A stretch of 64,000 bases of DNA from Zygnema circumcarinatum SAG 698-1b (taxonomy: Eukaryota > Plantae > Zygnematophyceae). Position 1 is the first letter of the stretch; every line of letters starts with the position of its first letter. The notes under the pieces were generated by a model, which did no database searches, was not told the DNA's origin, and saw nothing but the letters and a program-made list of their open reading frames with translations. The stretch is taken from positions 3,224,001 to 3,288,000 of the forward strand of contig CM074811.1 of the NCBI GenBank assembly GCA_037447605.1, given 5' to 3'. Position numbers and translations under genes: made by a program. Positions 3,001-53,545 of the stretch are shown in pieces.

Positions 3001-5062
3001 TTAGAGGGGCGTAAAGCGTCACGCTAATAATGACCACGCCGCTGCTCTCAACCCAAATGCACTTCGTTTGTGGCTGTGCACGCTGGTCTGAGTTCCTCCA
3101 AAGGTTTGATCGCCAAAGGGGTTTATCGCCCTAAGGCTGAATGTAGCGTACTCCACCCCAGTAGGCAGCCCTGCGATCTTGCCCGATGGTGCGCCACGAC
3201 TCGAAAAGTTGGTGGAACGATGACAGAGGTGAGGGGCCGGCCAACCCCGAGTCTCCGTCTCCAGTATGCTTTGTCATAGATCCCTCCACCAGTGACGCAG
3301 TCAACCCTCCTGCTCTCTCTGATCTCAGACAGATGATCCAGGAGGGGTATACTGGTGATCCTTTGTTCCTGGATGGCCAAGGTAATGGCTATAAGGACAA
3401 AGTGGTGTCTAAGGACGGATTCTGGTACCACGGCCAGCAGTTGGTCGTGCCCAAGGCCGGGACTGTACGGCAGCTCATTCTGGGTGAGCTACATGATCCT
3501 CCGTACCGAGGTCACATGGGAGTTGCCAAAACCCGTGAGGCACTGCTCCGAGAGTTCTGGTGGCCTGGACTCTCGAGGGATGTGAAAGCGTATGTACTCG
3601 CTTGTCCAACTTGTCAACGAAACAAACCCCGCACTGGCAGGATTCCTGGCCAGCTGCAACCCCTCACACCTCCTTTTCGGAAATGGGATAGTGTGGGTAT
3701 GGACTTGATCACAGATCTTCCTGTGACACCTCGGGGGCATGACTCCATCCTCGTCTTTGTCGATCGGCTTAGCAAGATGGTGCATTTTGCGCCAACTACT
3801 AAGACAGCTGGGGCCGACAAGATTGCACGGTTGTATGTTGACAAAGTGTGGAGCCAGCATGGTCTTCAGTCAGAAATTGTGTCTGACCGTGATCCACGAT
3901 TCACCGGCCATTTCTGGACGGAAGTGCTCAAAATCGTTGGGACCAAGCAGGCGTTGAGTACAGCTTTCCACCCGCAAACTGATGGCCAGACGGAACGGGT
4001 GAACAGGATCCTGGAGGATTACCTCCGGCATTATGTGGGACCTACCCCGGATGGGTGGGACGAACTGCTCCCAGTGGCTGAGTATGCCATCAATAATGCT
4101 TTCCAGGAGTCCATTGGTACCACCCTCTTTCTTTCTGAACTTTGGCCGCGATCCTCTAAATCCTCAAGCAACCAAGGATCAGCCCTTTGATCCGCGGGAA
4201 CATGGGCGCCCACGTAAACTCCCGATCCTGGAAGCCGAGAGGGACCTATGGGACTCAACCTCCTCAAGTAGCCAGATCTTTGTCCCGACTAATGTCCGAG
4301 GCGTCAAGTAGAGGGCAATCGCGTACCGCTAGCGCCCGCCATGCATTAAAAGGCCTATGCCGACCCTCACCGGGCATTCAACTCACCTTCAACGCGGGCT
4401 GCATGTGAGGGGTGCTGTTGGCACGGGCGAACTCTGAGACTCAAAGCTTATGGCGGAACACGTAAGCTGTGGCCCCGCTTCATCGGACCTTTTAAGGTCG
4501 TGAAGCGAATCAATGATGTCGCTTACAGGTTGGATTTACCATCCCACATGAAGGTGCATCCGGTCTTTCATGTGGGTTTGCTAAAGGTCTACCGTAGCGA
4601 TGGGAGGATCCAACCACCTCCCCCACCAGTGGAACTTGAAGGTGAACTTGAGTATGAGGTTGAAACCATTCAAGCCCACCGTCTTGTGAGAAAGGGTCGA
4701 TCTTCCCGTCACGAATACCTCGTGAAGTGGTTGGGCTATGGGGTTGAACATAGCACATGGGAAGCCGAGGGCAACTTAACCAATTGCCAGGAGCTCATCA
4801 ACTTGTACTGGGAGGCGCAGGCCGCAGGAGAGCGGGCGCGGGCGGCACGGGGGGTTCCTGAGCCGTCCACGCGCAACTCGGNNNNNNNNNNGCGCGGCCT
4901 ATCGCCGCCCTCCACGTGTCCTATTCAAACCTGTCGTCTTCCCACTAAGAACAGCGCTCTAGCGCACTGTTCAGACTGTGACCAAATCTACCAAGGACCG
5001 CCGACACTAGCTAAGGACCGTAAAGTGTACTACGTTGTTCTATACCCCTATTGTACACTACA
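1..5062 (+). mobile_element. Ty3/Gypsy LTR retrotransposon (chromovirus type), degenerate; 5' end outside the window
   Basis: Gag CCHC knuckle CFRCRKEGHKARDC (~929-970); protease LLDTGADANF (~1620); RT RMCIDYRALNK...LDLAQGYHQIR...KTAFRT (2130-2350); RNase H CDASGFALGAVL...YSATEQELLAVV; integrase H-H-C-C plus core (MDLITDLP, SDRDPRF, TDGQTERVN); GPF/Y motif and chromodomain EYEVETI...EYLVKWLGYGVEHSTWE (4650-4800). The order PR-RT-RH-IN is Gypsy-type. Frameshifts/stops near 2358, 3025-3186 and 4130-4400; RT YxDD region is degraded. Confidence 0.96.
4892..5062 (+). repeat. 3' end of the 3' LTR of the Gypsy element (remainder lost in N gap)
   Basis: 171 bp matching 31399-31569 with one visible mismatch; ends ...ACACTACA, then host sequence resumes. 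Confidence 0.9.
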
Positions 5063-5307
5063 GCGCTCGAACTCAAACTCAAACTCAAACTGGAACTAAA
5101 CTGCAACTGAAACTGGAGCTGGAAGATGATGCATGTTTCATTGCGGACACGTTACAATGGCTCGGCACCGTCCATGTGAAGCTGGAGAAGTACGCAAAGG
5201 AAGGGCGCGCTTTTACCTGCTTCAGGCGCTAGGGCCACCGCGCAGGCGGGGGCTGAGAGGAGGGCGACGACGAGGCATGCGCGGAGGACGGGAGAGAGGG
5301 CGGCCAT
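5063..5307 (-). pseudogene. Active-type trypsin-like protease, copy B1: exon 1 (signal peptide) and part of intron 1, interrupted by the Gypsy element
   Basis: ATG at 5307; exon 5307-5217 MAALSPVLRACLVVALLSAPPAVALAPEA-like, followed by G|GTAAAA donor; homologous to 38078-38348. Homology stops exactly at the LTR terminal CA (5062). Confidence 0.85.
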
Positions 5308-5993
5308 GGCTGCCGTGGGGGAAGGAGAGGAGGAGAGGGAGAGAGAGGGGGGAGAGGAAAGAGAGGGAGGAGAGGGTGGGCGGGTGGGAAGCAGGAGAGA
5401 GAGTTGAGGGAGGAGTGGGAGGGAGCTGACTACATAGTACCGTGAGAGGGCCTCCTACCCTTGGAAACACAAACACATAAACAATCCGTATGGCGCAGAC
5501 GAAACCTCGTCGTATCCGCGAAAGCGACAGTGAACCAGACGTTGATTGATTGGACTCTTCTGTCGGCGGAAGATTGGCCTCTGGGGGAGGATCATCTACC
5601 GACATGTACTGTCAAAGTTTCTCGAGAATCGGATCTTGACTTTCGCAACAAGTCCCCAATTGCACCGCCAGAGGACAAATTGTTGTACGGAGAGACTTGG
5701 CGACTTGTGATGATTACGATGCGCGTCAACGCCATTCAAAGCGTCAGCGTCTGCTGCGTACACTGATGACACGTGGCGAGCATTTTGACCGTCCGTTATG
5801 CTTTTTTGGCTTCCCCTAAAATTGAAAAGAGTAGCGGACGTCGATTAAACTTCCGAAATTTCGACATGAAAGGTAATTTTTCAGAGGCACTCTCCTTTCC
5901 TTTCCACCCGCGGGGGGATGTTGCGTTGGTCCCAACACGCCCTTGGGATGGCCATGAGAGCTCATGGCCGCGTCGGAGAATTCCAATCGAAAT

Positions 5994-6059
5994 TTCTAAA
6001 AGTGTTGTTATAAAATGCCTGACTTTAGGTCAGGCCGTTTTATAACAACACTTTTAGAA
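5994..6059. repeat. 66-bp near-perfect palindrome in the divergent promoter
   Basis: TTCTAAAAGTGTTGTTATAAAA ... TTTTATAACAACACTTTTAGAA (22-bp perfect arms) with inner GCCTGAC/GTCAGGC pairing; homologue at ~37330-37392. Confidence 0.9.
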
Positions 6060-6072
6060 TGGCCGGACAGTG

Positions 6073-6522
6073 GTACGAATGTACGGTCATACGGTCAGTT
6101 TCAAGTTCAAAGTCACTGGTTGTACAGTCATTGTAAAAGTGTTCTAAAACTCTTTAACTTTTAGGCATTAGAACGTTCTAATTCCGAAATCTAAAACTCT
6201 GAAAGCCGCTTGTACGGACAAATGTACACATCCCTAGGCCGCAGACATCCTTGTCCTGTACGGCTTCAATCAGCGCTGCGCATCGATTTCCGCACACGCC
6301 GGTCCTCCGAAACTTGCCATTCAGACTTCGTACGAACATGCATCTGTCTCGAAAACAAGACCAGGTACGTCCCTATCTTTCTACTGTTCCGAAAACGTTC
6401 ATTTCGTTTTGTACCATTCCGTTCTTTACTCTTCTTTGCTTTTCGTGAGCCGGAAGGAAATGTACCAGACAGTACGGCACAGTACCGACCAGCTTCGATC
6501 GGCGGCGGCTTGAGCCTATAAA
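6073..6522 (+). promoter_or_regulatory. GTAC-motif cluster plus TATA box upstream of pseudoprotease A1
   Basis: 12 GTAC tetramers counted in 6073-6485; TATAAA at 6517-6522, about 110 bp before the ATG and conserved in the copies at 34120 and 36859. Confidence 0.65.
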
Positions 6523-6631
6523 CTGCGCGCCGTGTCGAGGTCCGCATCAACGCGCTCCGCCTCCCGTCCCTCCCTCTCTCTATCTCCCTATCTCGCTCTC
6601 GCTCTCTCTCTCGCGTCTCACCGCAGCAGCC

Positions 6632-7600
6632 ATGGCCGTCCTCCTCGCCCTCCTGCCCCTCCTCCTTGCGGCCCTCCTCCCCAAGGCAGCGGCGGGCTCT
6701 CTTCAAACCGTCACAGTTGCCGCCTCGAAGGACGTTTCTCTTTCTGCCAAAGCTATAAGTGAATTGTCCCTCTCGGGCAACATGTCCCTCCCCCTCGCCG
6801 TCAGCAAGGGCGGCGTGGCTCCCAAGGGCTTCCTCACCTGCAACACGGGCTCCCCTCCATGGCCGGCCTCCCTCATCGTGCCGGGCTTCGAGGAGACCGG
6901 CCTCGGCTCGGGCATAGTTCTGCTCTTCTTCTCATTCGTCTCCACCGGCCGCACATTCCGCGCCTGCTCGGGGACTCTTATTGCGCCCACTCTCGTGGCT
7001 ACCTCCGCTTCGTGCGTCTATGACACGGACGTGAACGTGTGGCAGATCAACTCAACCGTCACCGTGACCGCATTCACAAGGAGGAACGGAGTGAGCGATG
7101 TCACCTTCTCCACCGCCTTCGTCTCCACCGCTTCGATCTTCACTGCCTTCATCAACGCGGCCTCGTTTGTGAACACACTCTTTGACGGCAGCGACATCGC
7201 CGTTGTGAAGCTGATTTCGCCCCTTGTCGGACAAGCCTTCAAGTGGACCAGCGCCGTGCCAGCCCCATTTCCGCGCGCTGCTTTTGGGTATCCCGCCCAG
7301 ACAGTCGACGGCAAGCACATCGTCTATGACGTGACGGTGCTGCCTCTCTCGCGCGGCTGCCAGGGCTACTCCACGAACGTTCTGTGCGAGGACTTGTCTG
7401 TGGAGGGAGGGATGGGAGGCGGCCCTCTCGTCACTCTGACCCCCAGTCTGCTCGCTGTGGGGGTGCTGTCCGGCGCTGCCCCGTCCAGCTGCCCGGCGTA
7501 CTTCACTGCTCTTGTGGGGACCTACTCCTTGGAGGTGCTCGCTCGCAGTGTGGGGTGCACTGCGGTCAACAGCAACGGCATCTTCTCCGCTTCATGCTGA
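6632..7600 (+). CDS. Secreted trypsin-fold (PA clan) pseudoprotease A1, intronless, 322 aa
   Basis: Hydrophobic signal peptide; CSGTLIAPTLVATSASC (His->Ser relative to TAAHC); SDIAVVKL (Asp retained); EGGMGGGPL (Ser->Gly relative to GxSGGP); 8 Cys conserved with the type B proteins. Confidence 0.88.
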   Translation: MAVLLALLPLLLAALLPKAAAGSLQTVTVAASKDVSLSAKAISELSLSGNMSLPLAVSKGGVAPKGFLTCNTGSPPWPASLIVPGFEETGLGSGIVLLFFSFVSTGRTFRACSGTLIAPTLVATSASCVYDTDVNVWQINSTVTVTAFTRRNGVSDVTFSTAFVSTASIFTAFINAASFVNTLFDGSDIAVVKLISPLVGQAFKWTSAVPAPFPRAAFGYPAQTVDGKHIVYDVTVLPLSRGCQGYSTNVLCEDLSVEGGMGGGPLVTLTPSLLAVGVLSGAAPSSCPAYFTALVGTYSLEVLARSVGCTAVNSNGIFSASC

Positions 7601-11727: not shown

Positions 11728-12543
11728 AACAGTCAGTGATACTGTGAGGAAAGTTCACGCATGGAAAGAAGGCAAGGGCCAGTTTTGAGGACAATAGTGA
11801 GGGATTGCGATTTTTTTGCGATTTTCTTGAAGTGAAGGTTATCCTGGTGACTTTTTTGTGTAACAGTGTCCAATTTCAAATCAATTAATTATTTTTTTGC
11901 AGTAGAATTTCTTTTCAGGAGCATTCAAGGTGTGGGCGTAGATGCAGATGAGACTCAATCGTGGTAAAAAATCAAGGAGGGGTTTTACATGCATGGCATG
12001 GCATGGCATGTGTTTTTGAATTGGCATCTTGGTGGGGATTTTTAATGGAAGGAAAGTTCGGATTCCTGATTGGAGGAAAAGTAAGGGTCACGGATGAAAT
12101 TTCTTTCAAAAAGCGATTAGTTCCTGGATAGGATTTAATTAACTCAAGGTGATGTGATTCGGTGTAATATGAGACTCGCTCTTAAGCTTTGGCCTCGACT
12201 GCAGTACTTCATTTCGTCCAAGGGCCTTGAAAAAGTTTCAGAATGGAGACCAGAAAAAAGCTCCAATCACAAGTTCCATGCAACCAAGATGCTGTTACAG
12301 TTTGGTTACTGTTACAGTTCAGTGACCGTCGATGAAATTCGCAGGTCCGCAAATTTTCGGATTTTTCGAAAACCCGTCCATCACGAAACCAGGTTTGTGG
12401 TGACGTTTGCAAGGATGCCTACATGACGTCATCAAATCGTCAAAAACCAAAACCAAGTTTTGGACAAGAAACTCGGCACGAACTCAACCAGGTTTGAGCC
12501 AGTGTGAACGCCCACGCTGTCCACAAAAACGTTTAATCGTTTT

Positions 12544-12878
12544 CACGTGTGAACACTTAGGCTCATCTTCACGTCACGTCTTTCGTCCACGTGTTACGTT
12601 CCCATTCGCCCCACTATCCACCGTGTCTCGTTCCCATTCGCCCCACCGTCCACACATTCGCCAATCACAGGCCGCCATTTGTCATCCCTTTTCTCCCCTC
12701 CACGTGGCACGCTATCAGTCCTCCCAATCCACCACGTGGCATTTCCTCGCCTTCCTCCCTGGCCTCTTCTCTCCCTCTCTCTCGCTCTCTCTATCTCTCT
12801 CTCTTTCTCTCTCTCTCTCGGCTCCGAACCCTGTCTTGAACCCCTGTCTAGAGTCTGTTTAAAAAGTCAAAACCCTAA
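12544..12878 (+). promoter_or_regulatory. G-box cluster and telo-box upstream of lipoyl synthase
   Basis: CACGTG at 12544, 12588, 12701, 12733; AAACCCTAA at 12870-12878. Confidence 0.45.
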
Positions 12879-12940
12879 TCCGTGGGGTGTCGTTAAATAG
12901 TCTTCCTCCTTCCCCTCTCTCTCTCTTTCTCTCCGCCGCT

Positions 12941-17191
<4,251 letters not shown>

Positions 17192-17385
17192 AAGATAATG
17201 GGGGAGGCAGGGCTAAAAAATTAAAGGGATTAGGGCTTTTAGACATACTGAAACAGTGTACATACAAAAATCAAAATGTTTATTTTCGTGCAAAAGCAAC
17301 GTATATTTGCTCACTCAATAGACTACCACAGAACTTGAGACATGTTGATACAAATAACAATCGCTTGAAAAACTGGGTTTTCACC

Positions 17386-24959: not shown

Positions 24960-25516
24960 AGCTCTTCCGTCCATGACTCATTTTTCAGTACTCCGACCCC
25001 TATCACACACCGCATCATGGTTTACACTCTCAGCCTCTTAAGCGTTGAACAAAACGCTGTGAAGGAAGATAACACATTCAAGCTTGATGCAATTACACAA
25101 AACACATGTTCGCACAAGATCAGCACATAACTCACAAATAATCTTTATTTCATCAGAGGCCTCAATTACAAATCACTTCATCCTTCCTTCTCTCTTCTCT
25201 TCTGTATTCTACATCTGCGCAGCACTTCCTTTTTCTACTTCCTGTCTAAGCTTCCAGAAGACACCTTTCTGAATCCTCCTTCCTGAACATCATACATTTC
25301 AGACGCTTCGCCTGACACTCTTCCTGCTCAGACCTTCTTGAATTCTCTCACACGCGCGGTCCCAATTCGTCCGTACAATTTCCATACGGTATCCGTACAT
25401 ATATCCGTACAACTTTTCGTACAATTTTCCGTGCAACTCGCAGCATCACAATCCATCACAAACCCGAGATCCAAGACCCCAACACTGCGCGCGTCCTATC
25501 GCCCATCGACCGACAC

Positions 25517-26491
25517 TCAGCACGAGGCGGAGAAGACGCCCTTGCTGCTGACCACAGTGCAGCTCAGACCTTGAACCAGCTTCTCCAACGAGTAGGTCCC
25601 CACAAGAGCAGTGAAGTACGCCGGACAGCTGTACGTTGAAGCGCCGGACAGCACCCCCACAGCGAGCAGACTGGGGGTCAGAGTGACGAGAGGGCCGCCT
25701 CCCATCCCTCCCTCCACAGACAAGTTCTCGCATAGAACGTTCGCCGAATAGCCCTGGCAGCCGCGCGAGAGAGGCAGCACCGTCACGTCATAGACGATGC
25801 TCTTGCCGTCGACTGTCTGGGCGGGATACCCAAAAGCAGCGCGCGGATATGGGGCTGGCACGGCGCTGGTCCACTTGAAGGCGTTTCCTTCGAGGGGAGA
25901 TTGCAGCTTCAAAGCGGCGATGTCGCTGCCGGCAGAGAGTGTGCTCGCCCACGAAGCCGCGTTGATGAAGGCGGTGAAGATCGTAGCGCTTTCAACATCG
26001 GAGACGGAGTAGGAGTAATCGCTCGGCCCGTTCTTCTTTGTGAAGGCCGTCACGTAGACGGTTGAGTTGAGCTGCCACACGTTCGAGTCCGTGTTATAGA
26101 CACATGAGGCGGAGGTGGCCACGAGAAAAGGCGCAATAAGAATCCCCGAGCAGGCGCGGAATGTGCGGTCGGTGGAGGCGAATGAGAAGAAGAGCAGAAC
26201 TATGCCGGAGGCGAGGCCGGTCTCCTCGAAGCCCGGCACGACGCGAGAGGCCGGCCATGGAGGGGAGCCCGTGTTGCAGGTGAGGAAGCCCTTGGGAGAC
26301 ACGCCGCGCTTGCTGCCGGCGAGGGGAAGGGACATGTTGCCCGAGAGGGAAAAATCACCTAAAGACTTGGCAGAAAGAGCAGCGTCCTTGGTGGGGGCAG
26401 CTGTGACTTTCACCGTTTGAAGAGAGGGGGGCGATGCTTCGGCGAGGAGGGGCACAAGGAGGAGGGGAAAGAGGGAGTGGAGGACGGCCAT
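25517..26491 (-). CDS. Secreted trypsin-fold pseudoprotease A2 (diverged copy), intronless, 324 aa
   Basis: Signal peptide; LVATSASC; SDIAALKL; EGGMGGGPL. Same His->Ser and Ser->Gly replacements as A1 despite many other substitutions. Confidence 0.88.
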   Translation of the reverse strand: MAVLHSLFPLLLVPLLAEASPPSLQTVKVTAAPTKDAALSAKSLGDFSLSGNMSLPLAGSKRGVSPKGFLTCNTGSPPWPASRVVPGFEETGLASGIVLLFFSFASTDRTFRACSGILIAPFLVATSASCVYNTDSNVWQLNSTVYVTAFTKKNGPSDYSYSVSDVESATIFTAFINAASWASTLSAGSDIAALKLQSPLEGNAFKWTSAVPAPYPRAAFGYPAQTVDGKSIVYDVTVLPLSRGCQGYSANVLCENLSVEGGMGGGPLVTLTPSLLAVGVLSGASTYSCPAYFTALVGTYSLEKLVQGLSCTVVSSKGVFSASC

Positions 26492-26661
26492 GACTGCTGC
26501 GGTGAGAGGAGAGAGGTGAGAGAGATGGAGAGCAAGGGAGAGGGAGAGAGAGAGACAGAGAAAGTGGGAAAGGGAGAGAGGAAAGTAATGAAACTTGTAG
26601 AGGAGCCGAACTCGTCGAACAATTCATAGGTGCGAGCAGCCATCGGACAAAACCGAACCAC

Positions 26662-27960
26662 GTACCGTACATACGTACATACATACGTACCGTACGGTAC
26701 GGTACGAAACAGTTGGTACGGGGTGTAACCGAACGCATGTCCGTACATGGAATTTGCATGACCAGTTTTGGTTGTGGCGAGAGACTGACTGACATGTGTG
26801 GGTATTGCGCTTTTTTTTTTTTTTCTTACAATTCTGTATGGTGGACTACCGTAAAACCAAACAGGGTGAGAAATTGTTAAACGAGTTTACTTGATTTCTC
26901 CATCTTCAATCTTATTCAATAGGATTGAACTTTGAACACTCGTGGTCGAAACTGTTTCGATTTAAGAAAGCGAAAAGTTTTAAAGGAAAGGTTCAAAGAC
27001 TCAATTGGTTCGGTCGCACGTGTAGATTCCACTTTTCACCACGTTGGTTCCGTGAAACTGTGCGATTCGAGGGATCCTGTTAACCTGAGGTCCATTATCT
27101 TCGTACGACTCTTCAGGTGAGTGGATCAACGATTTCTGTACTCGTACAGAAATCTCCGGATCTACTCCCTTTGCGATCCGCTAAAATCTCATTGATGATC
27201 GGTGGACCCAAGGAAAACTCAAATTGAAGACTATCAATAATTAATTGTTCAATGTTCAATTGGTTCTCCATAAAATTTGTATTGAGAAAAAAATTAGGAA
27301 TTCATTTCTCATTTCTCAAAATAAATCATGTTCACAAAAATAGGGTTTCCCCTTTTTTTTTTGAGACTTATTTTGAATTTTTTCTCTTTTTTAGAAGCCA
27401 AAATCATTGATTTCTAATTTTCTCAACCTGTTTGATTTTACTGTAGTGTGCGCCTATTCCTGCCTGCGTTGTTCCGTATATGTACGGACACCATGCCCTA
27501 CAGGTACAAACGCCCGCTTGCAGCAAAAGCGGAAATCCTTGGATGGCGGCCTCAAATTGGACTGACGTCCAAAACGACAAAAAAGGGTCACGGGACGGCC
27601 GTGGGCAAAAACAAGGATCCTTGAAATGTACGGCTTCTTGTACAGTAGCAAGTTTCGAAATTAGCTGTTTGAAAGGAGGAAGCCATGCGGTGCAATTCGT
27701 ACGTGTTTCGAGCTTCTATCAAAACAGATTCTACAATTCGCGCATATCGCATGGCCACGTGTCATAATGCCGAAAAAATCGACGGTTTGTATGGAGTTGA
27801 CGGCACATATGTACGGAATACGTGTTCATCGTACAGCAAGCAGGAAGCTTAAAATCTTATTTGTACAAAAAGGGAAAGCTTGCTGGGCAAGTCTGGAAAC
27901 TAACGAATGGGCCGCCACCACGTTGCGATCCGAATCTCCAGAGATTCTATTTGTACAACT
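26662..27960. promoter_or_regulatory. GTAC-rich divergent promoter between A2 and B2
   Basis: 9 GTAC in 26662-26746 (CGTACCGTAC...CGTACGGTACGGTAC) and about 9 more in 27480-27960. Confidence 0.6.
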
Positions 27961-28209
27961 CGGCAGGTAAGCCTCCCCCATGAAATTCTCCACTGACAAA
28001 ATTGGCCACGCATAGGGCGCCACGTCACGCTTGGTCAACAATATTCCTCCCTCTCCTCCCCTACCTATACGTCCCTCTCCCTTTCACCGTCTCCCTCATC
28101 TCCCTAACCTCCCTCCCCATCCTATCCTTCTCTCCCTCTCTCTCCCCCTCCCTCGCTTCCCTCTCCCCCCTCTCTCTCCCTCTCCTGCTCTCCTTCCCCT
28201 GCGGCAGTC

Positions 28210-29887
28210 ATGGCCGCCCTCTCTCCCCTCCTCCGCGCATGCCTCGTCGTCGCCCTCCTCTCAGCCCCTGCCTGCGCGGTGGCCCTAGCGCCTGAAGCAG
28301 GAACCCCTGAGCGCGCCCTTCCTTTACGTACTTCTCCAGCTTGACATGGACGCTGCCAAGCCAGTGCAACGTGTCCACGTGGCAATGCATTATCTTTCAG
28401 CTTCAGCCTCACTTTCACTTTCAGTTTTAGTTTCAGTTGCAGTTTCAGTTTCAGTTGCCGTTTGAGTTTGAGTTTGAGTTTGAGATTGAGTTCGAGCGTG
28501 GCCCTTTGTCCCCTGCAGAGCGCGGGGCCTCCTCGCGGGCGGAGGGCGCGGACAGCGGCCGGCGGGAGGGCGTCACGTCACCCGACCCCGCGGGCCACGG
28601 CGTGCACATGTACGCCGCACCGTTCTCCGTTTTGTTCGCCGTTCGCAGCACCTGCATTGCGCATCCGCTACATGGCGGCAGTTCCGTTTGCAGTAAAACA
28701 TTCTCAGCGTTCCGTGCATACATAGAACCAACCCGATTCCTTCCGCCAATGCAGCAATGTACCAAAAAAATCGACGTGAATCTAAAATAAATATTTTACC
28801 TTGAATTTCTTAAAACTTTTGCATCTGCAGATTCCTCCCGGAGCGCCCTGAAGGGACCTCCAGTCCCTCCACACGTGAGGAGAAGCCTTCGTCCCACGTG
28901 GAACGCCGGGAGTTGGCAGAATCCACGGGGCTCACCTTCCCGGAAACTTCCTCATTCAAGGCTCCCGTACTGAAAGGCAAGAAGGCAGTGCCTATCGACC
29001 TCCTCCGCAAAGAGCTCCCGTTGATCGGGTACATGAGTTTACCCACGTTCGGTGGATCCCCCAGCGAGTTGATCCTGCGAGGATCCACCCCGAACCCTAA
29101 ACCCCAAAGCGGTGTGGCCCCGGCGGGGTTTGCGACATGCAACAAAGGTTTGCCCGCGGCCAGGGTGGTCCCCGGATTGGAGGACGCGGGGCTGAGCTCG
29201 GGGGTGGTCCTATTGCTTCTGGTCACCCGGGCGGGCCCCGTCGGCCTGTGCTCGGGGGCAATGATTGCGCCCACTCTCGTGCTCACTGCCGCGCACTGTC
29301 TTTACGATACCGACAAAAACAAGTGGATGGTCGGTGGATCCGTCAATTTGGCAGCATTCGTCCAAGTAAACGGCGCTGGCGCTGATGACACATATTTTGG
29401 AGCGTACTATGATGAAGTCCAGATCTACACGGAGTTCCAGCAGGCCCCCTCGTTTCAGAGCACGCTTTTGAACGGCTCAGATCTCGCGGTCGTGAAGCTC
29501 AAGGACGCCCTCCCTGGACAGACGTACACGTGGAGCGCTCCGAAGGGCTCCGACCCACGCGCCAATTTTGGGTACCCCGCTGTTACGAACGATGGCGTCA
29601 GCCTCGTGTATGACGTGACGTCAAAATCCGTCACTCTCGGTTGCTTCCAGCTCTCCAGCTCCATACTGTGCCAGGACGTCTCGGTCGAGGGCGGCATGAG
29701 CGGCGGCCCGACGGTCGGTCCGTACGACGGAACCAACGTCGTGGCGACGCTTTCCGCCGGGGCCGTCAACGGCTGTCCGGCGCTGTCCACGGTCCTGACG
29801 GGGCCCGCGTACCCCCTGCAGGGCCTGGTCACAAGGATCGGCTGCAAGGTCAAAGTGAGCAAAGGGGTGTACTCGGCGACGTGCTAG
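28210..29887 (+). CDS. Secreted trypsin-fold serine protease B2, intact catalytic triad, 3 exons
   Basis: Exon 1 28210-~28327 (signal peptide MAALSPLLRACLVVALLSAPACA), exon 2 28519-28609, exon 3 28831-29887; phases are compatible. Motifs LTAAHCL, SDLAVVKL, EGGMSGGP. The donor used in the other copies reads GA here (28301); a same-phase C|GTACTT lies at 28327. Confidence 0.85.
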
Positions 29888-30749
29888 GACGGGGGAGGGA
29901 GGGAGGGGGCATGAGACCCTTGTTGGCGCAAGTTCTTCTTGACGATGTTGTTTTAACAGCAAGGCGGACTTGGGCTCAAGTTTTTGTTAGAGGTGGGCAA
30001 ATAAGGGGGATGGATGGATGGTCGTCGAGATGGGTTTTTGGGCGTAAAGGTTTAAGTTATGATAGTTTAGTTTTTTTTGGGGAGGGGTGCGTTGTTGGTG
30101 CAGATTTTTAAATCGCTGGAGGTTTGAATCTGTTTACTTCAATTTAATGTCATATTGGAAGTGTGTGAAATGATGGACTGTGATAATTGCAATTAACCAA
30201 GGCCTTCTGTCCCCACTCCACGGCTTCCTAATAACGGATTGTGATTCTACACAGGAATACAAAGTCATGTGTATGTAGCAGGCTGGGTAATGACACAATG
30301 AAAAATTAAATTTGCACGTGCGGGGCATCCCTACCGGAGATAGGTTGTGGCCTTGTTACACGTATCGTATGTCGATTGCAATCGCTCGTGCAATGTGTGG
30401 GACTGTCCATGCCATTCCTCATGACTCCAAGCGTCCCTCTAACATCAAAAAAAGCTAAGCACACGAACCCTCAACCCTAATTCCTAATCCCTAAACCCTG
30501 GACGTTAAACCCTAAGAGCTACCGAGGAATGCCGGCTGTGAGAACCTGCGGGCGGGAGGCGGCCGAGAAAGGGCAGGATGAGCTAGAATCTACGCGGCAT
30601 GGGCGTGGGGTCGTAGTTCAGCCCCGAGAGGATCACGCCTGCAAAGCAGGAAAGAGGCAGGCGGGAGGGAGGGAGGGAGCGGTGAGGGGAGGGGAAGTGG
30701 AGGGAGGGGAGGGGAGGGAGGGAGGGGAGGGGAGGGGAGGGGAGGGGAA

Positions 30750-31569
30750 TGTTGGAAACTAGAGCCTGGTCTCTCTCATTCACTGCACTCTCAGACATGC
30801 TTGTATTTCAGCGAACACACCCACCCCCAATGCACACACCGGAAGGAAAGAATAAAAGCTGAAAGAAAAGACACCGAGAAGTGAAGTAAAGGAGAAAGCC
30901 CCCACTGGCTCAAAACTCCTTAAAATAAATAGGAAAGGGTTACACACAGAAATTCAGCCCTCAGGCGATTCCTAATGCTCTGCCCTACACACCTATCTAC
31001 TGCTGCCCATACAGCAGGCCTCTACACTCAGCAGCACGAGCCGAGATGCAAGGTTCTAAGGGTTACTAACACTATGCACAAAGCAACCTAAATACTAGCC
31101 GCTGAAGCACCTCCACGTTCCACCGCGTGCCACCGCGTTCCACCTCCATGTCGTCGAGGTCGCTCCGCGCCTCCTGGAGTTCGCTCCGCGCCGCGCGGGA
31201 GCTCAGCTCGAGAGGCCGCCATGGGGAGGGGAGTGTCCGTACAGAAACACTCCTCCGAAAGCTCCTCCGTCGCTCCGAACCTTCCGCGCTCCTTCGCGCC
31301 TCCAATAATCCGTACTAAGCTAACTCATAGCCGCGCGACCTATCGTCGCGCGCCACGTGTCTACATCACTTATCGATTCTAAGCGGACTCCACTGGTGGC
31401 GCGGCCTATCGCCGCCCTCCACGTGTCCTATTCAAACCTGTCGTCTTCCCACTAAGAACAGCGCTCTAGCGCACTGTTCAGACTGTGACCGAATCTACCA
31501 AGGACCGCCGACACTAGCTAAGGACCGTAAAGTGTACTACGTTGTTCTATACCCCTATTGTACACTACA
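30750..31569 (+). mobile_element. Solo LTR (820 bp) of the same Gypsy family
   Basis: Starts TGTTG and ends CTACA; flanked by a GGGAA 5-bp target-site duplication (30745-30749 and 31570-31574); last 171 bp match 4892-5062; inserted in a GGAGG microsatellite. Confidence 0.93.
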
Positions 31570-33042
31570 GGGAAGAGGAGGGAGGGGAGGGGAGGGGAAG
31601 GGGAGGGGAAGGGGAGGGGCAGGGGAGAGGCAGGGGACGGGAAGAGGAGGGGAAGGGGAGGGAGGTGAAGAGAGAGGAGGGGAAGGGAGAGGAGAGGAGG
31701 GGGAGGGAGAGGAAAGGTAGGGAGGGGAAGGGAGGGAAGGGGAGGGGAGGGGAAGGGGAGGGAGGGGAGGGGAGGGGAAGGAGAGGAAANNNNNNNNNNG
31801 GAGGGGAAAGGGAGGGGAAGGGGAGGGAAAGGGGAGGGGAAGGGGAGGGGAAGGGGAGGGGAAGGGGAGGGAGGTGAAGGGAGAGGAGGGGAATGGAGGG
31901 GAAGGAAAGGCGGGGGAGGGGAGGGGAAGGGAAAGGAGGGGAGGGGAGGGAGGGGAAGGCCTGATCGGATCCCGTCGGATCTGTGTGGGCCCGGCGATGG
32001 GGATCAGAGAGACCTCGATTCGTCGGCCCATCAGTCAGTCCGCGAAAGTCCTGCGGCGGCGGTCCGGTTGGTCGCTGACGTCATAGGACGGTCCGAAAAG
32101 GCAAACTTGTAGCCACTAAACTGAGTTTTTCGCAATGCCAATGGTTGGCAGCTGCCTTGCATTGCTATCCAACGGCTTTTATTTTAAGAACAATCCAAAT
32201 GAGTTGAAAAAAAATAAAAAACAAAATAATAATAATAGAAGACTGGTCGTTTGTCCATGCCCATGCCCATGCCCATGCCCATGCGAGTCCAGGGAAACGG
32301 AGTTGCGTGAAATGGCACTGGGACGAAACAAAACGGCTCGCGCACGGGACGGAACGGGATACAGTTTCACGGTCCCATGGACATGCGCGGCATGGCGACT
32401 CCGCCCAACCAATCTGAGCCGTCCGATTCTTGCGATCTAGAATCTGGGCCATCTTGGCGGCCTCGCTTGAGCCGCGCATTTGAGCTCCGACGCCCGTGAA
32501 GTTGAGAGAGGCTAAGAGGCACTGTTCTCAAGATTGCTAACACTCCCATTGGCTGAAAAAAGCGCATGCACATATGTATGCACATGCATGTGTCACTGTC
32601 GCCCATCGTTGAATCAGATAGACAGATAAAACGAAGTTACTTGGTCCCAAAATAACATCATTGGAAACCCGCTAGCAGCAACTCGCATTCAAAATTTCAG
32701 TAAAAACTGATTTTTCTTAATAAAGGAGAGATTCGACAGGTAATGCCCAAAATTCTCTCCTAAAACCAAATACACATACAAATATATATTGCCGAGATCC
32801 CACCATTGCCTATTTCCAAATCACCAGCTTCCCCTGGAAGTACCCAATATTCGCCACGAGTCCCCAACAGGAATCAGCAAATCTTCAACAGAACGTCCAC
32901 GAATCGTATTTGCCAGTTCACCAACTCCTACAAACAGCACATCGCATGACTTTTTACACTCTCAGCCTCATAATTGGTCAAAAAACTCGAGACCAAAGAC
33001 ACCAAAACGTTGCACGTGTGCTGTCCGCACATCGACCGACGC

Positions 33043-34011
33043 TCAGCACGAAGCGGAGAAGATGCCGTTGCTGTTGACCGCAGTGCACCCCACACTGCGA
33101 GCGAGCACCTCCAAGGAGTAGGTCCCCACAAGAGCAGTGAAGTACGCCGGGCAGCTGGACGGGGCAGCGCCGGACAGCACCCCCACAGCGAGCAGACTGG
33201 GGGTCAGAGTGACGAGAGGGCCGCCTCCCATCCCTCCCTCCACAGACAAGTCCTCGCACAGAACGTTCGTGGAGTAGCCCTGGCAGCCGCGCGAGAGAGG
33301 CAGCACCGTCACGTCATAGACGATGCTCTTGCCGTCGACTGTCTGGGCGGGATACCCAAAAGCAGCGCGCGGATATGGGGCTGGCACGGCGCTGGTCCAC
33401 TTGAAGGCTTGTCCGACGAGGGGCGAAATCAGCTTCACAACGGCGATGTCGCTGCCGTCAAAGAGTGTGTTGACAAACGAGGCCGCGTTGATGAAGGCAG
33501 TGAAGATCGAAGCGGTGGAGACGAAGGCGGTGGAGAAGGTGACATCGCTCACTCCGTTTCTCCTTGTGAATGCGGTCACGGTGACGGTTGAGTTGATCTG
33601 CCACACGTTCACGTTCGTGTCATAGACGCACGACGCGGAGGTAGCCACGAGAGTAGGCGCAATAAGAGTCCCCGAGCAGGCGCGGAATGTGCGGCCGGTG
33701 GAGGCGAATGAGAAGAAGAGCAGAACTACGCCGGAGCCGAGGCCGGTCTCCTCGAAGCCCGGCACGATGAGGGAGGCCGGCCATGGAGGGGAGCCCGTGT
33801 TGCAGGTGAGGAAGCCCTTGGGAGCCACGCCGCCCTTGCTGACGGCGAGGGGGAGGGACATGTTGCCCGAGAGGGACAATTCACTTATGGCTTTGGCAGA
33901 AAGAAAAACGTCCTTCGAGGAGGCAACTGTGACGGTTCGAAGAGAGCCCGCCGCTGCCTTGGGGAGGAGGGCCGCAAGGAGGAGGGGCAGGAGGGCGAGG
34001 AGGACGGCCAT
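33043..34011 (-). CDS. Pseudoprotease A3' (identical to 35782-36750; possibly an assembly duplicate)
   Basis: ATG at 34011 (MAVLLALL...), 322 aa, TSASC / GMGGGP. Confidence 0.7.
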   Translation of the reverse strand: MAVLLALLPLLLAALLPKAAAGSLRTVTVASSKDVFLSAKAISELSLSGNMSLPLAVSKGGVAPKGFLTCNTGSPPWPASLIVPGFEETGLGSGVVLLFFSFASTGRTFRACSGTLIAPTLVATSASCVYDTNVNVWQINSTVTVTAFTRRNGVSDVTFSTAFVSTASIFTAFINAASFVNTLFDGSDIAVVKLISPLVGQAFKWTSAVPAPYPRAAFGYPAQTVDGKSIVYDVTVLPLSRGCQGYSTNVLCEDLSVEGGMGGGPLVTLTPSLLAVGVLSGAAPSSCPAYFTALVGTYSLEVLARSVGCTAVNSNGIFSASC

Positions 34012-35781
34012 GGCTGCTGCGGGAGACGCGAGAGAGAGAGCGAGAGCGAGATAGGGAGATAGAGAGAGGGGGGGACGGGAGGCAGAGCGCGTTGCTGCGG
34101 ACCTCGACACGGCGCGCAGTTTATAGGCTCAAGCCGCCGCCGCTCGAAGCTTGAACGTATTGTGCCGTACTGTCTGGTACATTTCCTTCCGGCTCACGAA
34201 AAGAAAAGAAAAGAAAAGAAACGAAAAGTACGGAACGGTACAAAACGGAGTGTACGTTTTCGGAACGGTAAAAAGTTAGGCACGTATCTGGTCTGGTTCG
34301 CAGGACAGATGCATGTCCGTAAGAAGTCTGAATGGCAAGTTTCGGAGGACCGGCGTGTGCGGAAATCGATGCGCAGCGCTGATTGGCGCCGTACAGGACA
34401 AGGATGTCTGCGGCCTAGGGATGTTATATTTGTCCGTACAAGCGGCTTTCAGAGTTTTAGATTTCGGAATTAGAACGTTGGAATGACTAAAAGTTCAGAG
34501 TTTTAAAACACTTTTACAATGACTGTACAACCAATGATTTTGAACTTCAAACTGACCGTACGACCCTACATTCGTACGACTGTCCAGCCATTCTAAAAGT
34601 GTTGTTATAAAACGGCCTGACTTAGTCAGGCATGTTATANNNNNNNNNNCGGGGGAGGGGAGGGGAAGGGAAAGGAGGGGAGGGGAGGGAGGGGAAGGCC
34701 TGATCGGATCCCGTCGGATCTGTGTGGGCCCGGCGATGGGGATCAGAGAGACCTCGATTCGTCGGCCCATCAGTCAGTCCGCGAAAGTCCTGCGGCGGCG
34801 GTCCGGTTGGTCGCTGACGTCATAGGACGGTCCGAAAAGGCAAACTTGTAGCCACTAAACTGAGTTTTTCGCAATGCCAATGGTTGGCAGCTGCCTTGCA
34901 TTGCTATCCAACGGCTTTTATTTTAAGAACAATCCAAATGAGTTGAAAAAAAATAAAAAACAAAATAATAATAATAGAAGACTGGTCGTTTGTCCATGCC
35001 CATGCCCATGCCCATGCCCATGCGAGTCCAGGGAAACGGAGTTGCGTGAAATGGCACTGGGACGAAACAAAACGGCTCGCGCACGGGACGGAACGGGATA
35101 CAGTTTCACGGTCCCATGGACATGCGCGGCATGGCGACTCCGCCCAACCAATCTGAGCCGTCCGATTCTTGCGATCTAGAATCTGGGCCATCTTGGCGGC
35201 CTCGCTTGAGCCGCGCATTTGAGCTCCGACGCCCGTGAAGTTGAGAGAGGCTAAGAGGCACTGTTCTCAAGATTGCTAACACTCCCATTGGCTGAAAAAA
35301 GCGCATGCACATATGTATGCACATGCATGTGTCACTGTCGCCCATCGTTGAATCAGATAGACAGATAAAACGAAGTTACTTGGTCCCAAAATAACATCAT
35401 TGGAAACCCGCTAGCAGCAACTCGCATTCAAAATTTCAGTAAAAACTGATTTTTCTTAATAAAGGAGAGATTCGACAGGTAATGCCCAAAATTCTCTCCT
35501 AAAACCAAATACACATACAAATATATATTGCCGAGATCCCACCATTGCCTATTTCCAAATCACCAGCTTCCCCTGGAAGTACCCAATATTCGCCACGAGT
35601 CCCCAACAGGAATCAGCAAATCTTCAACAGAACGTCCACGAATCGTATTTGCCAGTTCACCAACTCCTACAAACAGCACATCGCATGACTTTTTACACTC
35701 TCAGCCTCATAATTGGTCAAAAAACTCGAGACCAAAGACACCAAAACGTTGCACGTGTGCTGTCCGCACATCGACCGACGC

Positions 35782-36750
35782 TCAGCACGAAGCGGAGAAG
35801 ATGCCGTTGCTGTTGACCGCAGTGCACCCCACACTGCGAGCGAGCACCTCCAAGGAGTAGGTCCCCACAAGAGCAGTGAAGTACGCCGGGCAGCTGGACG
35901 GGGCAGCGCCGGACAGCACCCCCACAGCGAGCAGACTGGGGGTCAGAGTGACGAGAGGGCCGCCTCCCATCCCTCCCTCCACAGACAAGTCCTCGCACAG
36001 AACGTTCGTGGAGTAGCCCTGGCAGCCGCGCGAGAGAGGCAGCACCGTCACGTCATAGACGATGCTCTTGCCGTCGACTGTCTGGGCGGGATACCCAAAA
36101 GCAGCGCGCGGATATGGGGCTGGCACGGCGCTGGTCCACTTGAAGGCTTGTCCGACGAGGGGCGAAATCAGCTTCACAACGGCGATGTCGCTGCCGTCAA
36201 AGAGTGTGTTGACAAACGAGGCCGCGTTGATGAAGGCAGTGAAGATCGAAGCGGTGGAGACGAAGGCGGTGGAGAAGGTGACATCGCTCACTCCGTTTCT
36301 CCTTGTGAATGCGGTCACGGTGACGGTTGAGTTGATCTGCCACACGTTCACGTTCGTGTCATAGACGCACGACGCGGAGGTAGCCACGAGAGTAGGCGCA
36401 ATAAGAGTCCCCGAGCAGGCGCGGAATGTGCGGCCGGTGGAGGCGAATGAGAAGAAGAGCAGAACTACGCCGGAGCCGAGGCCGGTCTCCTCGAAGCCCG
36501 GCACGATGAGGGAGGCCGGCCATGGAGGGGAGCCCGTGTTGCAGGTGAGGAAGCCCTTGGGAGCCACGCCGCCCTTGCTGACGGCGAGGGGGAGGGACAT
36601 GTTGCCCGAGAGGGACAATTCACTTATGGCTTTGGCAGAAAGAAAAACGTCCTTCGAGGAGGCAACTGTGACGGTTCGAAGAGAGCCCGCCGCTGCCTTG
36701 GGGAGGAGGGCCGCAAGGAGGAGGGGCAGGAGGGCGAGGAGGACGGCCAT
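35782..36750 (-). CDS. Secreted trypsin-fold pseudoprotease A3, 322 aa
   Basis: Nearly identical to A1; signal peptide; TSASC, DIAVVKL, GMGGGP; about 10 GTAC in 36900-37320 upstream. Confidence 0.88.
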   Translation of the reverse strand: MAVLLALLPLLLAALLPKAAAGSLRTVTVASSKDVFLSAKAISELSLSGNMSLPLAVSKGGVAPKGFLTCNTGSPPWPASLIVPGFEETGLGSGVVLLFFSFASTGRTFRACSGTLIAPTLVATSASCVYDTNVNVWQINSTVTVTAFTRRNGVSDVTFSTAFVSTASIFTAFINAASFVNTLFDGSDIAVVKLISPLVGQAFKWTSAVPAPYPRAAFGYPAQTVDGKSIVYDVTVLPLSRGCQGYSTNVLCEDLSVEGGMGGGPLVTLTPSLLAVGVLSGAAPSSCPAYFTALVGTYSLEVLARSVGCTAVNSNGIFSASC

Positions 36751-38077
36751 GGCTGCTGCGGGAGACGCGAGAGAGAGAGCGAGAGCGAGATAGGGAGATA
36801 GAGAGAGGGGGGGACGGGAGGCAGAGCGCGTTGCTGCGGACCTCGACACGGCGCGCAGTTTATAGGCTCAAGCCGCCGCCGCTCGAAGCTTGAACGTATT
36901 GTGCCGTACTGTCTGGTACATTTCCTTCCGGCTCACGAAAAGAAAAGAAAAGAAAAGAAACGAAAAGTACGGAACGGTACAAAACGGAGTGTACGTTTTC
37001 GGAACGGTAAAAAGTTAGGCACGTATCTGGTCTGGTTCGCAGGACAGATGCATGTCCGTAAGAAGTCTGAATGGCAAGTTTCGGAGGACCGGCGTGTGCG
37101 GAAATCGATGCGCAGCGCTGATTGGCGCCGTACAGGACAAGGATGTCTGCGGCCTAGGGATGTTATATTTGTCCGTACAAGCGGCTTTCAGAGTTTTAGA
37201 TTTCGGAATTAGAACGTTGGAATGACTAAAAGTTCAGAGTTTTAAAACACTTTTACAATGACTGTACAACCAATGATTTTGAACTTCAAACTGACCGTAC
37301 GACCCTACATTCGTACGACTGTCCAGCCATTCTAAAAGTGTTGTTATAAAACGGCCTGACTTAGTCAGGCATGTTATAACAACACTTTAGAAATTTCGAT
37401 TGGAATTCTGCGACACGGCCCTGCGCTCTCATGGCCATCACAAGGGCGTGTTGAGACCAACGCCATATCCCCCCGGGGCGGAAAGAAAGGGAGAGTGTCT
37501 CTGAAAGAGTACCTTTTGCGTTGGAATTTTGGAGGAGGTTTCATCGATGTCCGCTACTCATTTCAATTTTAGGGAAGCCAAAAGCCTAACGGACGGTCAA
37601 AATGCTCAACACGTGTCATCATTGTACTCAACAGACACTGACGCTTTGAATGGCGTTGACGCGCATCGTAATCCTCACAAGACGCCAAGTCCCTCCGTAC
37701 ACAAATTTGTCCACTGGCGGTGAAATTGTGGACCGGTTGCGAAAGAGAAGATCCGATTCTCCAGAAGCTGTTACCGTACATGTCGGCAGATGACCCTCCC
37801 CCAGGGACCAGTCTTCCGCCGACAGAGGAGTCCAATCAGTCAACGTCTGGTCAAATGTCGCTTTCGCCGATACGACGAGGTTTCGTCTGTGCCGTACGGA
37901 CTGTTTCTGTGTTTGTGTTTCCAAGGTTAGGAGGCCCTCTCACGGTACTATGTTGTCAGCTCCCTCCCACTCCCTCAACTTTCTCTCCCGCTTCCCACCC
38001 GCCCGCCATCCTCCCTTTCCTCTCTTCCCTCTCCCCCCTCTCTCTCACTCTCCTCCTCTCCTTCCCCCGCAGCAGCC

Positions 38078-39749
38078 ATGGCCGCCCTCTCTCCCGTCCT
38101 CTGCGCATGCCTCGTCGTCGCCCTCCTCTCAACCCCTGCCTGCGCGGTGGCCCTAGCGCCTGAAGCAGGTAAGAGCGCGCCCTTCCTTTGCGTACTTCTC
38201 CAGCTTCACATGGACGGTGCCGAGCCATTCTAACGTGTCCGCGTGGCAACATGGATCATCTTCCAGCTCCAGTTTCAGTTGCAGTTTCAGTTTCAGTTCC
38301 AGTTTAAGTTCCAGTTTGAATTTGAGTTTGAGTTTGAGTTCAAGCGCGGCCCTCTCCTCTGTCCCTCCCCCGCAGATCGCGGGGCCTCCTGGCGGGCGGA
38401 GGGCGCGGACAGCGGCCGGCGGGATGGCGTCACGTCACGTGACCGCGTGGGCCACGGCGCGCACATGTACGCCGCTCCGTTCTCCGTTCTGTTCGACGTT
38501 CGCAGCACCTGCACTGCGCATCCTCCACATGGCGGCAGTGCCGTTGGCAGTAAAACATTCTCAGCGTTCCGTGCATACATAGAACCACCCCGATTCCTTC
38601 CGCCAATGCAATGTACCAAAAAAAAACGACGTTAATCTTAAATAAATATTTGACCTTGAATTTCTTAAAACTTTTGCATCTGCAGATTCCTCCCGGAGCG
38701 CCCTGAAGGGACCAGTCCAGTCCAGTCCAGTCCCTCCACACGTGTGGAGAAGCCTTCGTCCCACGTGGAACGCCGGGAGTTGGCAGAATCCGCGGGGCTC
38801 ACCTTCCCGGAAACTTCCTCATTCAAGGCTCCCGTACTGAAAGACAAGAAGGCAGTGCCTATCGACCTCCTCCGAGCTCCCGTTGATCGGGTACATGAGT
38901 TTACCCACGTTCGGTGGATCCCCCAGCGAGTTGATCCTGCGGGGATCCACCCAGAACCCTAAACCCCAAAGCGGTGTGGCCCCGGCGGGGTTTGCGACAT
39001 GCAACAAAGGTTTGCCCGCGGCCAGGGTGGTCCCCGGATTGGAGGACGCGGGGCTGAGCTCGGGGGTGGTCCTATTGCATCTGGTCACCCGGGCGGGCCC
39101 CGTCGGCCTGTGCTCGGGGGCAATGATTGCGCCCACTCTCGTGCTCACCTCGGCGCACTGTCTTTACGATACCGACAAAAACATGTGGATGGTCGGTGGA
39201 TCCGTCAACTTGGTAGCATTAGTCCAAGTCAACGGTGCTGACGCTGATGACACATATTTTGGAGCGTACTATGATGAAGTCAAGATCTACACGGAGTTCC
39301 AGCAGGCCCCCTCGTTTCAGAGCACGCTTTTGAACGGCTCAGATCTCGCGGTCGTGAAGCTCAAGGACGCCCTCCCTGGACAGACGTACACGTGGAGCGC
39401 TCCGAAGAGCTCCGACCCACGCGCCAATTTTGGGTACCCCGCTGTTACGAACGATGGCGTCAGCCTCGTGTATGACATGACGTCAAAACCCGTCACTCTC
39501 GGTTGCTTCCAGCTCTCCACCTCCATACTGTGCCAGGACGTCTCGGTCGAGGGCGGCATGAGCGGCGGCCCGACGGTCGGTCCGTACGACGGAACCAACG
39601 TCGTGGCGACGCTTTCCGCCGGGGCCGTCACCGGCTGTCCGGCGCTGTCCACGGTCCTGACGGGGCCCGCGTACCCCCTGCAGGGCCTGGTCACAAGGAT
39701 CGGCTGCAAGGTCAAAGTGAGCAGAGGGGTGTACTCGGCGACGTGCTAG
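38078..39749 (+). pseudogene. Trypsin-fold protease B3, frameshifted
   Basis: Exons 38078-38168, 38376-38466, 38686-39749. A 5-nt deletion near 38874 (CTCCGCAAAGAGCTC in B2 vs CTCCGAGCTC) leads to a stop at 38962, before the protease domain. Triad motifs TSAHC / DLA / GMSGGP are still present downstream. Confidence 0.8.
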
Positions 39750-40420
39750 GACGGGGGAGGGAGGGAGGGGGCATGAGACCCATGTTGGCGCAAGTTCTTG
39801 TTGACGATGTTGTTTTAACAGCAAGGCGGACTTGGGCTCAATTTTTTGTTAGAGATGGGCAATAAGGGGGGTGGATGGATCGATAGACGGACAAAAGGAT
39901 GGGTTTTGGGGCGTAGGGCTTAAGTTACATTTGCTGCTTTTTTCAGTGGGGGAGTGGGTTAGCTTTTGTAAATCGCTGAAGGTTTGAATAGAGTTGATGG
40001 GGAGGAAGAGCATGATGAGTCTTCTTTAGGGGCTCAAGTTCAGGTTTGCCGTTATGACGAACGCGCGTGCACCCCGTTAATTTTTACATGCCGACGTTTG
40101 ATCACGACATTGTGCATGGAAACACGAGGCGACACTTGTCGACAACTCGACTTCTTGTGATTGTCGAGAACTCTGTCAAAGCATGCGCATGTTTGCAATG
40201 TGATTTTGTTTAACATACTGTAAGGTACACCTTGCAACCATGTGCATCCCTCGTACCCATGTCCAGAGGGGGGCCTTAGCACCCCTCAGATTTTGAAAAG
40301 CTGTCAGCCTCTGATCGCCTCTGAAGGATGAATAGCGATAATACACACTCGAATTTCAGATTTTTTTTCCCAACTAATTGGTCAGCCCCCTCTGCCGTGA
40401 ATCCGCCCCTGCCTATGTGC

Positions 40421-50517: not shown

Positions 50518-50579
<62 letters not shown>

Positions 50580-52039: not shown

Positions 52040-52101
<62 letters not shown>

Positions 52102-53477: not shown

Positions 53478-53545
53478 TCCCAATTTTCTCCCATTCTCCC
53501 TCCCCTCCCTCTCTCCCCTCTCTCCCCTCTGTGTCGCTGCACTCC

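Follow-up and report, generated by a model that had tools for sequence, protein, structure and literature searches.

A maintained and transcribed S1 pseudoprotease encoded head-to-head with an active-type relative in the alga Zygnema circumcarinatum

Does a catalytically dead protease that is encoded head-to-head with an active-type paralog act together with it, or does it have a role of its own? The question is raised by 64,000 nucleotides of Zygnema circumcarinatum SAG 698-1b (contig CM074811.1, positions 3,224,001 to 3,288,000; hereafter the window), which carry three divergent pairs of genes for S1 protease-fold proteins: A, in which two catalytic residues are replaced, and B, of the active type. 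An earlier note, made from the same DNA, had proposed an obligately co-expressed module of enzyme and pseudoenzyme, possibly a heterodimer, duplicated as a unit three times. The analysis supports A as a maintained, transcribed S1 pseudoprotease. In our best reading, to which we give a probability of roughly 0.45, A is a secreted, catalytically dead S1 homologue that works alone as an abundant extracellular binding protein. A then looks like the maintained part of the locus and B like an active relative carried along, not like the two halves of an obligatory pair. In favour of this reading, every A copy is intact, and of the three B copies in the window two are interrupted.

The three A genes are intact, intronless open reading frames (ORFs) of 322, 324 and 322 amino acids (A1, A2 and A3), with hydrophobic N-termini, eight cysteines and the motifs TSASC and GMGGGP; what had been described earlier for A, including the intact ORF and signal-peptide-like N-terminus of A2, was thereby confirmed and extends to all three copies. 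At the family-conserved columns of the triad, A2 has Ser129 at the His57 site and Gly264 at the Ser195 site, and Asp190 is kept at the position of Asp102. All A copies keep Asp102 and carry serine (TCA/TCG) for His57 and glycine (GGA) for Ser195, each at least two base changes away from the B codons. The catalytic triad of the chymotrypsin fold requires His57 and Ser195, and by established S1 chemistry the predicted A proteins would have lost both the nucleophile and the base. The A genes lack the sequence signature of an active S1 protease and show that of a pseudoprotease, namely a kept fold, a broken triad and an intact gene.

Profile and structural comparisons indicate that the two-barrel chymotrypsin fold (S1, clan PA) has been kept in A. 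The Pfam Trypsin profile PF00089 scored 34.5 bits with A2, 34.4 with A1 and 31.7 with B2 (cut-off 20.6). An AlphaFold model of the A2 core, built on an alignment of 76 rows, reached a predicted local distance difference test score (pLDDT) of 91.4 and a predicted template modelling score (pTM) of 0.91. Its best Foldseek match in the PDB was the glutamyl endopeptidase 1p3c (E 9e-11, template modelling score 0.64/0.78, 14% identity), and its neighbours in the Atlas were trypsin-like or V8-like clusters. With the S1B glutamyl endopeptidases (Bacillus intermedius 1p3c, V8/Esp), which are also the best profile match, A and B have in common the lack of Asp194 and a GYP motif. They differ from them in the low identity, in the eight cysteines and in having eukaryotic or viral-like rather than bacterial nearest relatives; moreover, in the alignment around the Ser195 motif, both A and B have Leu213 and Val190 instead of the His213 and Thr190 of the glutamyl endopeptidase S1 pocket. 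Neither A nor B has the Asp194 of the S1A trypsin/chymotrypsin type, which forms a salt bridge with Ile16, a methionine preceding the Ser site in both. The motif R/VVPG was considered as an activation site: some relatives have IVGG-like ends at this place in the alignment, and the confident part of the model starts there, but the arginine is missing in A1, A3 and the relatives, and the motif was kept as a lead only.

The same pair of substitutions, Ser for His and Gly for Ser beside a retained Asp, is found in human azurocidin (heparin-binding protein), an inactive member of S1A (PMC9921997). Azurocidin resembles A as a secreted chymotrypsin-fold protein and acts in a non-proteolytic role. A is not its orthologue, and the substitution pattern has apparently been reached independently, by convergence; azurocidin is cationic, whereas mature A is predicted to be acidic (pI about 4.9). 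Unlike azurocidin, A belongs to a rare algal and viral family, is intronless and multi-copy, and lies head-to-head with a paralog. The azurocidin gene is itself clustered with active paralogs (elastase, proteinase 3). One may ask whether A could be active through a rearranged site, for instance with the serine at the His57 position as nucleophile, since this serine lies in the cleft and A retains Asp102, Ser214 and the glycines of the oxyanion loop. The lack of a general base and the inactivity of azurocidin with the same pattern make this highly improbable.

An exhaustive profile search placed A and B in a small family (28–36% identity, E 1e-53 to 1e-12) with the Cys pattern and motifs in common, which includes P0004, P0005 (Tribonema gayanum), P0008 and a few more. 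In contrast to A, all close outside relatives keep His, Asp and Ser and none is dead, so that the loss is derived in A. A and B grouped as sister clades with moderate support (96/85 in one tree and 62/65 in another). No second copy or dead paralog was found on the contigs of relatives at four fetched loci, three of the contigs being short. Transfer from bacteria was also considered and is unsupported at close range, the nearest relatives being algal or giant-virus-like. The S1 family is patchy across algae and giant-virus-like DNA; P0008 (L002:10001-11266) is an active-type member on a giant-virus-like contig with polB, Rpb1 and D5 primase genes.

We then asked whether A is maintained by selection. 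Among 59 columns conserved in the outside relatives, A2 keeps 48 and B2 keeps 50. Relative-rate tests of A against B with five outgroups gave no excess change on A (p 0.34–1.0), and the stem lengths in the tree were 0.43 for A and 0.61 for B. The coding DNA of A1 and A3 is 98.2% identical as compared with about 91% in the flanks, with a ratio of nonsynonymous to synonymous rates (dN/dS) of 0.30 in the core (p=0.049). The changes between A2 and A1 avoid the family-conserved columns (8/72 versus 41/181, p=0.036), and the only indel between the two genes is in frame. After 123 substitutions, A has acquired no stop and keeps all eight cysteines (simulated p=0.005). We read this pattern as a kept fold with a surface that may be changing freely or adaptively.

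A2 compared with A1 and A3 gives a dN/dS of about 0.9–0.96. Such a value would fit A having no specific binding role, either as a bulk secreted protein (storage or structural) or as a duplicate that decays slowly while gene conversion keeps it intact; the many copies and the signs of conversion between neighbouring B genes (see below) point in the same direction. However, A shows no acceleration along its long stem, retains the conserved columns as well as the active enzyme does, has lost neither frame nor cysteines, and is strongly transcribed. We consider this explanation unlikely.

The B genes are in a different state. B2 is whole: its spliced ORF encodes 421 amino acids with TAAHC, GSDLA and GMSGGP, and its splice joints occur in contigs of three sequencing runs (X1, X14 and X18), which were taken as RNA because of these joints. 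With His57, Asp102 and Ser195 in an intact spliced ORF, B2 has the sequence expected of an active S1 protease. The ancestral first GT donor of B2 is mutated (now GA), and a donor 27 bases downstream of the B1/B3 site is used with unchanged phase (28301-28328), which adds nine residues after the signal peptide. B1 is interrupted in intron 1 by a Ty3/gypsy element (protease, integrase), and any remainder of the gene would be found on the far side of the retrotransposon, outside the window. In B3, a 5-bp deletion near 38875 in the assembly is predicted to cause a frameshift and a stop about 28 codons on, ahead of the protease domain; the gene reads TSAHC, and its His, Asp and Ser codons are present. 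The earlier statement that B keeps TAAHC, Asp and GMSGGP is therefore correct for B2, but not for B1, which has no protease exon in the window, nor for B3. A second copy of the long terminal repeat (LTR) end that interrupts B1 lies between pairs 2 and 3 (31399-31570, 99.4%), and the element is young.

Table 1. Genes, spacers and associated features of the A/B pairs, with positions in the window
Feature	Position	Strand	Description
LTR end	4892..5063	+	end of the Ty3/gypsy element (protease, integrase) interrupting B1 intron 1
B1 remnant	5064..5307	-	exon 1 (5217-5307) followed by about 150 bp of intron 1; protease exon absent from the window
Pair-1 spacer	5308..6631		16 GTAC (3.2 expected); about 89-91% identical to the pair-3 spacer
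A1	6632..7600	+	intact pseudoprotease gene, 322 aa
A2	25517..26491	-	intronless, 324 aa; signal peptide, short pro-region and S1 protease-fold domain
Pair-2 spacer	26492..28209		21 GTAC cores (3.6 expected), grouped at 26662-26743 and 27482-27953
B2 exon 1	28210..28327	+	signal peptide; joint 28327>28519 (GT..AG) in runs X1, X14 and X18
B2 exon 2	28519..28609	+	pro-region; joints in RNA-like contigs
B2 exon 3	28831..29887	+	pro-region and S1 protease domain with intact His/Asp/Ser; joint 28609>28831 (GT..AG)
A4	33043..34011	-	identical to A3, within a 2729-bp repeat (100%) that spans the gap 34640-34649; probable assembly echo
A3	35782..36750	-	intact pseudoprotease gene, 322 aa; 98.2% DNA identity to A1
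Pair-3 spacer	36751..38077		16 GTAC (3.4 expected)
B3	38078..39749	+	exons 38078-38168, 38376-38466 and 38686-39749 by homology to B2

The window, which is eukaryotic DNA, contains introns, Ty3/gypsy sequence, short gaps of N and telomere-like repeats of the plant type. A six-frame motif scan combined with tblastn across its 64 kb revealed four A ORFs and two B protease exons. The fourth ORF, A4, was treated as an assembly echo, which it probably is, because the pattern of a repeat across a gap of ten N recurs at the 51958 gap. Two direct repeats each straddle such a gap, 31911-37378 (2729 bp, 100%) and 50446-53481 (1514 bp, 99.9%); both are probably echoes of the assembly, which would inflate gene counts, as with A4.

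The three divergent arrangements have their start codons 1325, 1719 and 1328 bp apart (pairs 1, 2 and 3), in agreement with the 1.3–1.7 kb of the earlier note, and a B gene or its remnant is linked to a dead paralog in all three, pair 2 being the only one that is fully intact. The paralogy of A and B also stands: they are 46–48% identical over the protease part and have in common all eight cysteines, the GFxTCN and PGxExxGLxSG blocks and the terminal SAxC. As for duplication as a unit, this holds for pairs 1 and 3, which belong to one inverted 3.3-kb block with 91% identity, spacer included. It does not hold for pair 2, the spacer of which aligns with the two others only at short ends resembling untranslated regions (UTRs) and in one 54-bp block. 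Between pairs 2 and 3, DNA identity is 87% for the A2/A3 coding region, 97.8% for exon 3 of B2/B3, 94% for intron 2 and 82% for intron 1. A2/A3 and B2/B3 exon 3 thus differ in age. Pair 2 would accordingly be an old copy with a B gene that was later homogenised with B3, or else a rebuilt one. The gradient of B2/B3 identity itself, rising from intron 1 to exon 3 (98%), looks like conversion between neighbouring genes, and B2 and B3 (28145-30129 and 38013-39989) have bases in common that differ from the common B variant in the reads.

Additional copies are suggested by the depth of DNA contigs. In the DNA run X3, contigs with the exact A2 sequence had a depth of about 20–24, variant A of about 350–430 and variant B of about 380–470. 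Contig depth does not equal copy number and was taken as a hint only, which would point to about 15–20 further copies of both A and B in the genome, at a ratio of about 1:1.

Transcription of the two genes was then compared in the three RNA-like runs. The depth of RNA contigs is a weak measure and no reliable guide to the ranking of genes; several contigs are summed in some of the figures, and the strains may differ. A2 is transcribed, since exact-match contigs including the 3′ UTR reached a depth of 2738–4745 in run X1, as compared with 18 for the spacer. A2 and B2 were within about two- to four-fold of each other in all three runs (X1, 2738–4745 versus 1685–3465; X14, 972–3018 versus 979–2603; X18, 16–32 versus 19–92). 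For the common A type (variants matching A1/A3), however, the depth was far above that of variant B: about 70,000–150,000 versus 8,600–19,800 in X1, 50,000–150,000 versus 210–950 in X14, and 360–410 versus 74–157 in X18, the ratio shifting from about 3 to more than 100 between runs. The pattern hints at a shared promoter in pair 2 and, for the common A type, at an output that is uncoupled and much higher. By contig depth, A2 and B2 would fit the co-expression that had been proposed, whereas the common type is strongly unequal.

These results bear on the possibility that A and B form an obligately co-expressed heterodimer of enzyme and cofactor, by analogy with the insect CLIP-domain serine protease homologues (CLIP-SPH, CLIPA), which are inactive S1 homologues acting as cofactors of active proteases (PMC7580898). 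The head-to-head layout found three times, the DNA copy depth of about 1:1 and the similar A2 and B2 depth in RNA-like contigs would all be expected for such a complex, and clusters of GTAC occur at both ends of the spacers. On the other hand, B1 is interrupted and B3 frameshifted beside intact A partners, and of the mechanisms considered this one accords worst with broken B genes and with a common-type A:B ratio that is both large and variable. Close outside relatives are all active, and the four fetched loci, three on short contigs, hold single copies with no dead partner. Head-to-head paralogs also arise by a single inverted duplication with no functional tie; all eight cysteines being common to A and B, no odd one is left for a cross-link; and A has neither the CLIP domain nor the Asp194 activation switch of CLIP-SPH (Met instead). 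We judge a heterodimer improbable. What stands of the proposed module is a maintained, transcribed pseudoprotease in an apparently multi-copy pair at about 1:1 in DNA; "obligate" and "heterodimer" are not supported by the interrupted B copies, the intact A copies and the variable RNA ratio.

The GTAC core, the word of SBP-box factors, is enriched in all three spacers, including the non-homologous one of pair 2, and at both ends (p 0.002). Smaller GTAC clusters are also present at other gene starts in the window, so the clusters mark promoters and do not demonstrate pair-specific or copper control; the candidate reading of the arrays as a sign of cassette-specific (copper) co-regulation was rejected for this reason, although the enrichment is real, and the same fact weakens their value as an argument for a heterodimer. 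The transcribed 3′ region of A2 has, about 100–150 bp past the stop (25370-25425), four near-matches to the SBP-type word TNCGTACAA. The pair-2 spacer also contains a repeated element (26850-27445) with high DNA depth and joints to the opposite strand, and one contig skips 27114-27445; the element resembles a miniature inverted-repeat transposable element and is possibly polymorphic.

How could A have come to work alone? An old inverted duplication of an active B-type gene would have given rise to A, and such an origin accounts for both the head-to-head layout and the common divergent promoter region. The segment would then have been amplified and partly homogenised by gene conversion. If selection acted mainly on the dose of A, spare B copies could break. 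The emptied but intact cleft of A, or its surface loops, may capture peptides or proteins of the wall or the mucilage without cleaving them, and A would serve as a ligand, scaffold or sink in the manner of azurocidin, haptoglobin or HGF-beta. The roles described for S1 pseudoproteases include ligands, cofactors, decoys and scaffolds (PMC13194640).

Four observations weigh against A working alone. In the DNA run, variant A and variant B reach similar depths, so that most copies of the unit still contain B. Pair 2 has kept its head-to-head layout although its spacer no longer aligns. The similar depth of A2 and B2 in the three RNA-like runs fits co-regulation. Finally, the dN/dS of A2 against A1/A3 gives no clean purifying signal and, taken alone, looks neutral.

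Alternatively, A may guard B-type proteases or act as their paralogous decoy; made in excess, it would soak up microbial or algal inhibitors or hold the substrate of B, leaving the few active B enzymes able to function. The precedent is found in Phytophthora sojae, where the secreted enzyme PsXEG1 is accompanied by a paralog, PsXLP1, with the role of an inhibitor decoy (PMC7959567). That system differs from A/B in being a pathogen effector from glycoside hydrolase 12, not a protease; XLP1 carries a C-terminal deletion, and the losses in A are at single positions. The XLP1 protein lacks enzyme activity, and its gene lies head-to-head with XEG1. For A, a decoy role would be consistent with the retention of the fold and of the cleft-lining motifs with only the catalytic residues lost, with the excess of A over B and the dispensability of extra B copies, with surface diversification as the source of a near-neutral dN/dS in an intact ORF, and with the persistence of the pair-2 layout despite the turnover of its spacer. 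It fits the same data nearly as well as A working alone. But A-type RNA is abundant in X14, where variant B is almost absent, and the linkage is accounted for by descent alone. We hold a decoy to be somewhat unlikely, though clearly less so than a heterodimer.

A broader form of the idea is that the secreted S1 protease and its dead twin are a functional unit under one bidirectional promoter, the dead copy being made in excess from about 20 copies and protecting or directing the enzyme as a decoy or cofactor. This seems doubtful to us. If true, it would be the host-side counterpart of the decoy pairs of pathogens and apparently the first in green plants, none having been found in the literature.

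To our knowledge, secreted chymotrypsin-fold proteases together with dead homologues are well known in animals and hardly in green plants. S1 pseudoproteases and enzyme/decoy pairs are already known, and A/B is not a new kind of system; it is the family and the pairing that are new to the literature searched. No description of either was found there or among named proteins, green plants included, in agreement with the earlier note, which had not recognised the arrangement as described in green plants. Sequence searches agree. A word-index homologue search gave no match for A2, three weak trypsin-like matches for B2 and one known row for the family profile; exact look-ups of A1, A2, A3 and B2 exon 3 in sequence collections gave no match; an A/B alignment scan of metagenome and viral contigs gave no relative; and no NCBIfam family was matched. 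The B2 searches were made with exon 3 instead of the joined ORF. No close homologue of the A/B pair was found in any collection searched, related algal genomes lying outside the scope of the search.

An alga of the sister group of land plants thus appears to hold a multi-copy, strongly transcribed S1 pseudoprotease beside an active relative. The locus is a compact system in which to ask how a dead enzyme acquires a function: the proteins are small and expressible, their genes intronless or simple, and natural variants are at hand in the intact pair 2 and the broken B1 and B3.

Two further features of the window lie outside the pairs. Between pairs 1 and 2, an exon at 12887-13468 encodes the lipoyl synthase N-terminal domain (PF16881) of a housekeeping gene. 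Long degenerate telomere-like arrays of the TTTAGGG type, in both orientations and internal to the contig, occupy 55287-56114 and 60561-63159.

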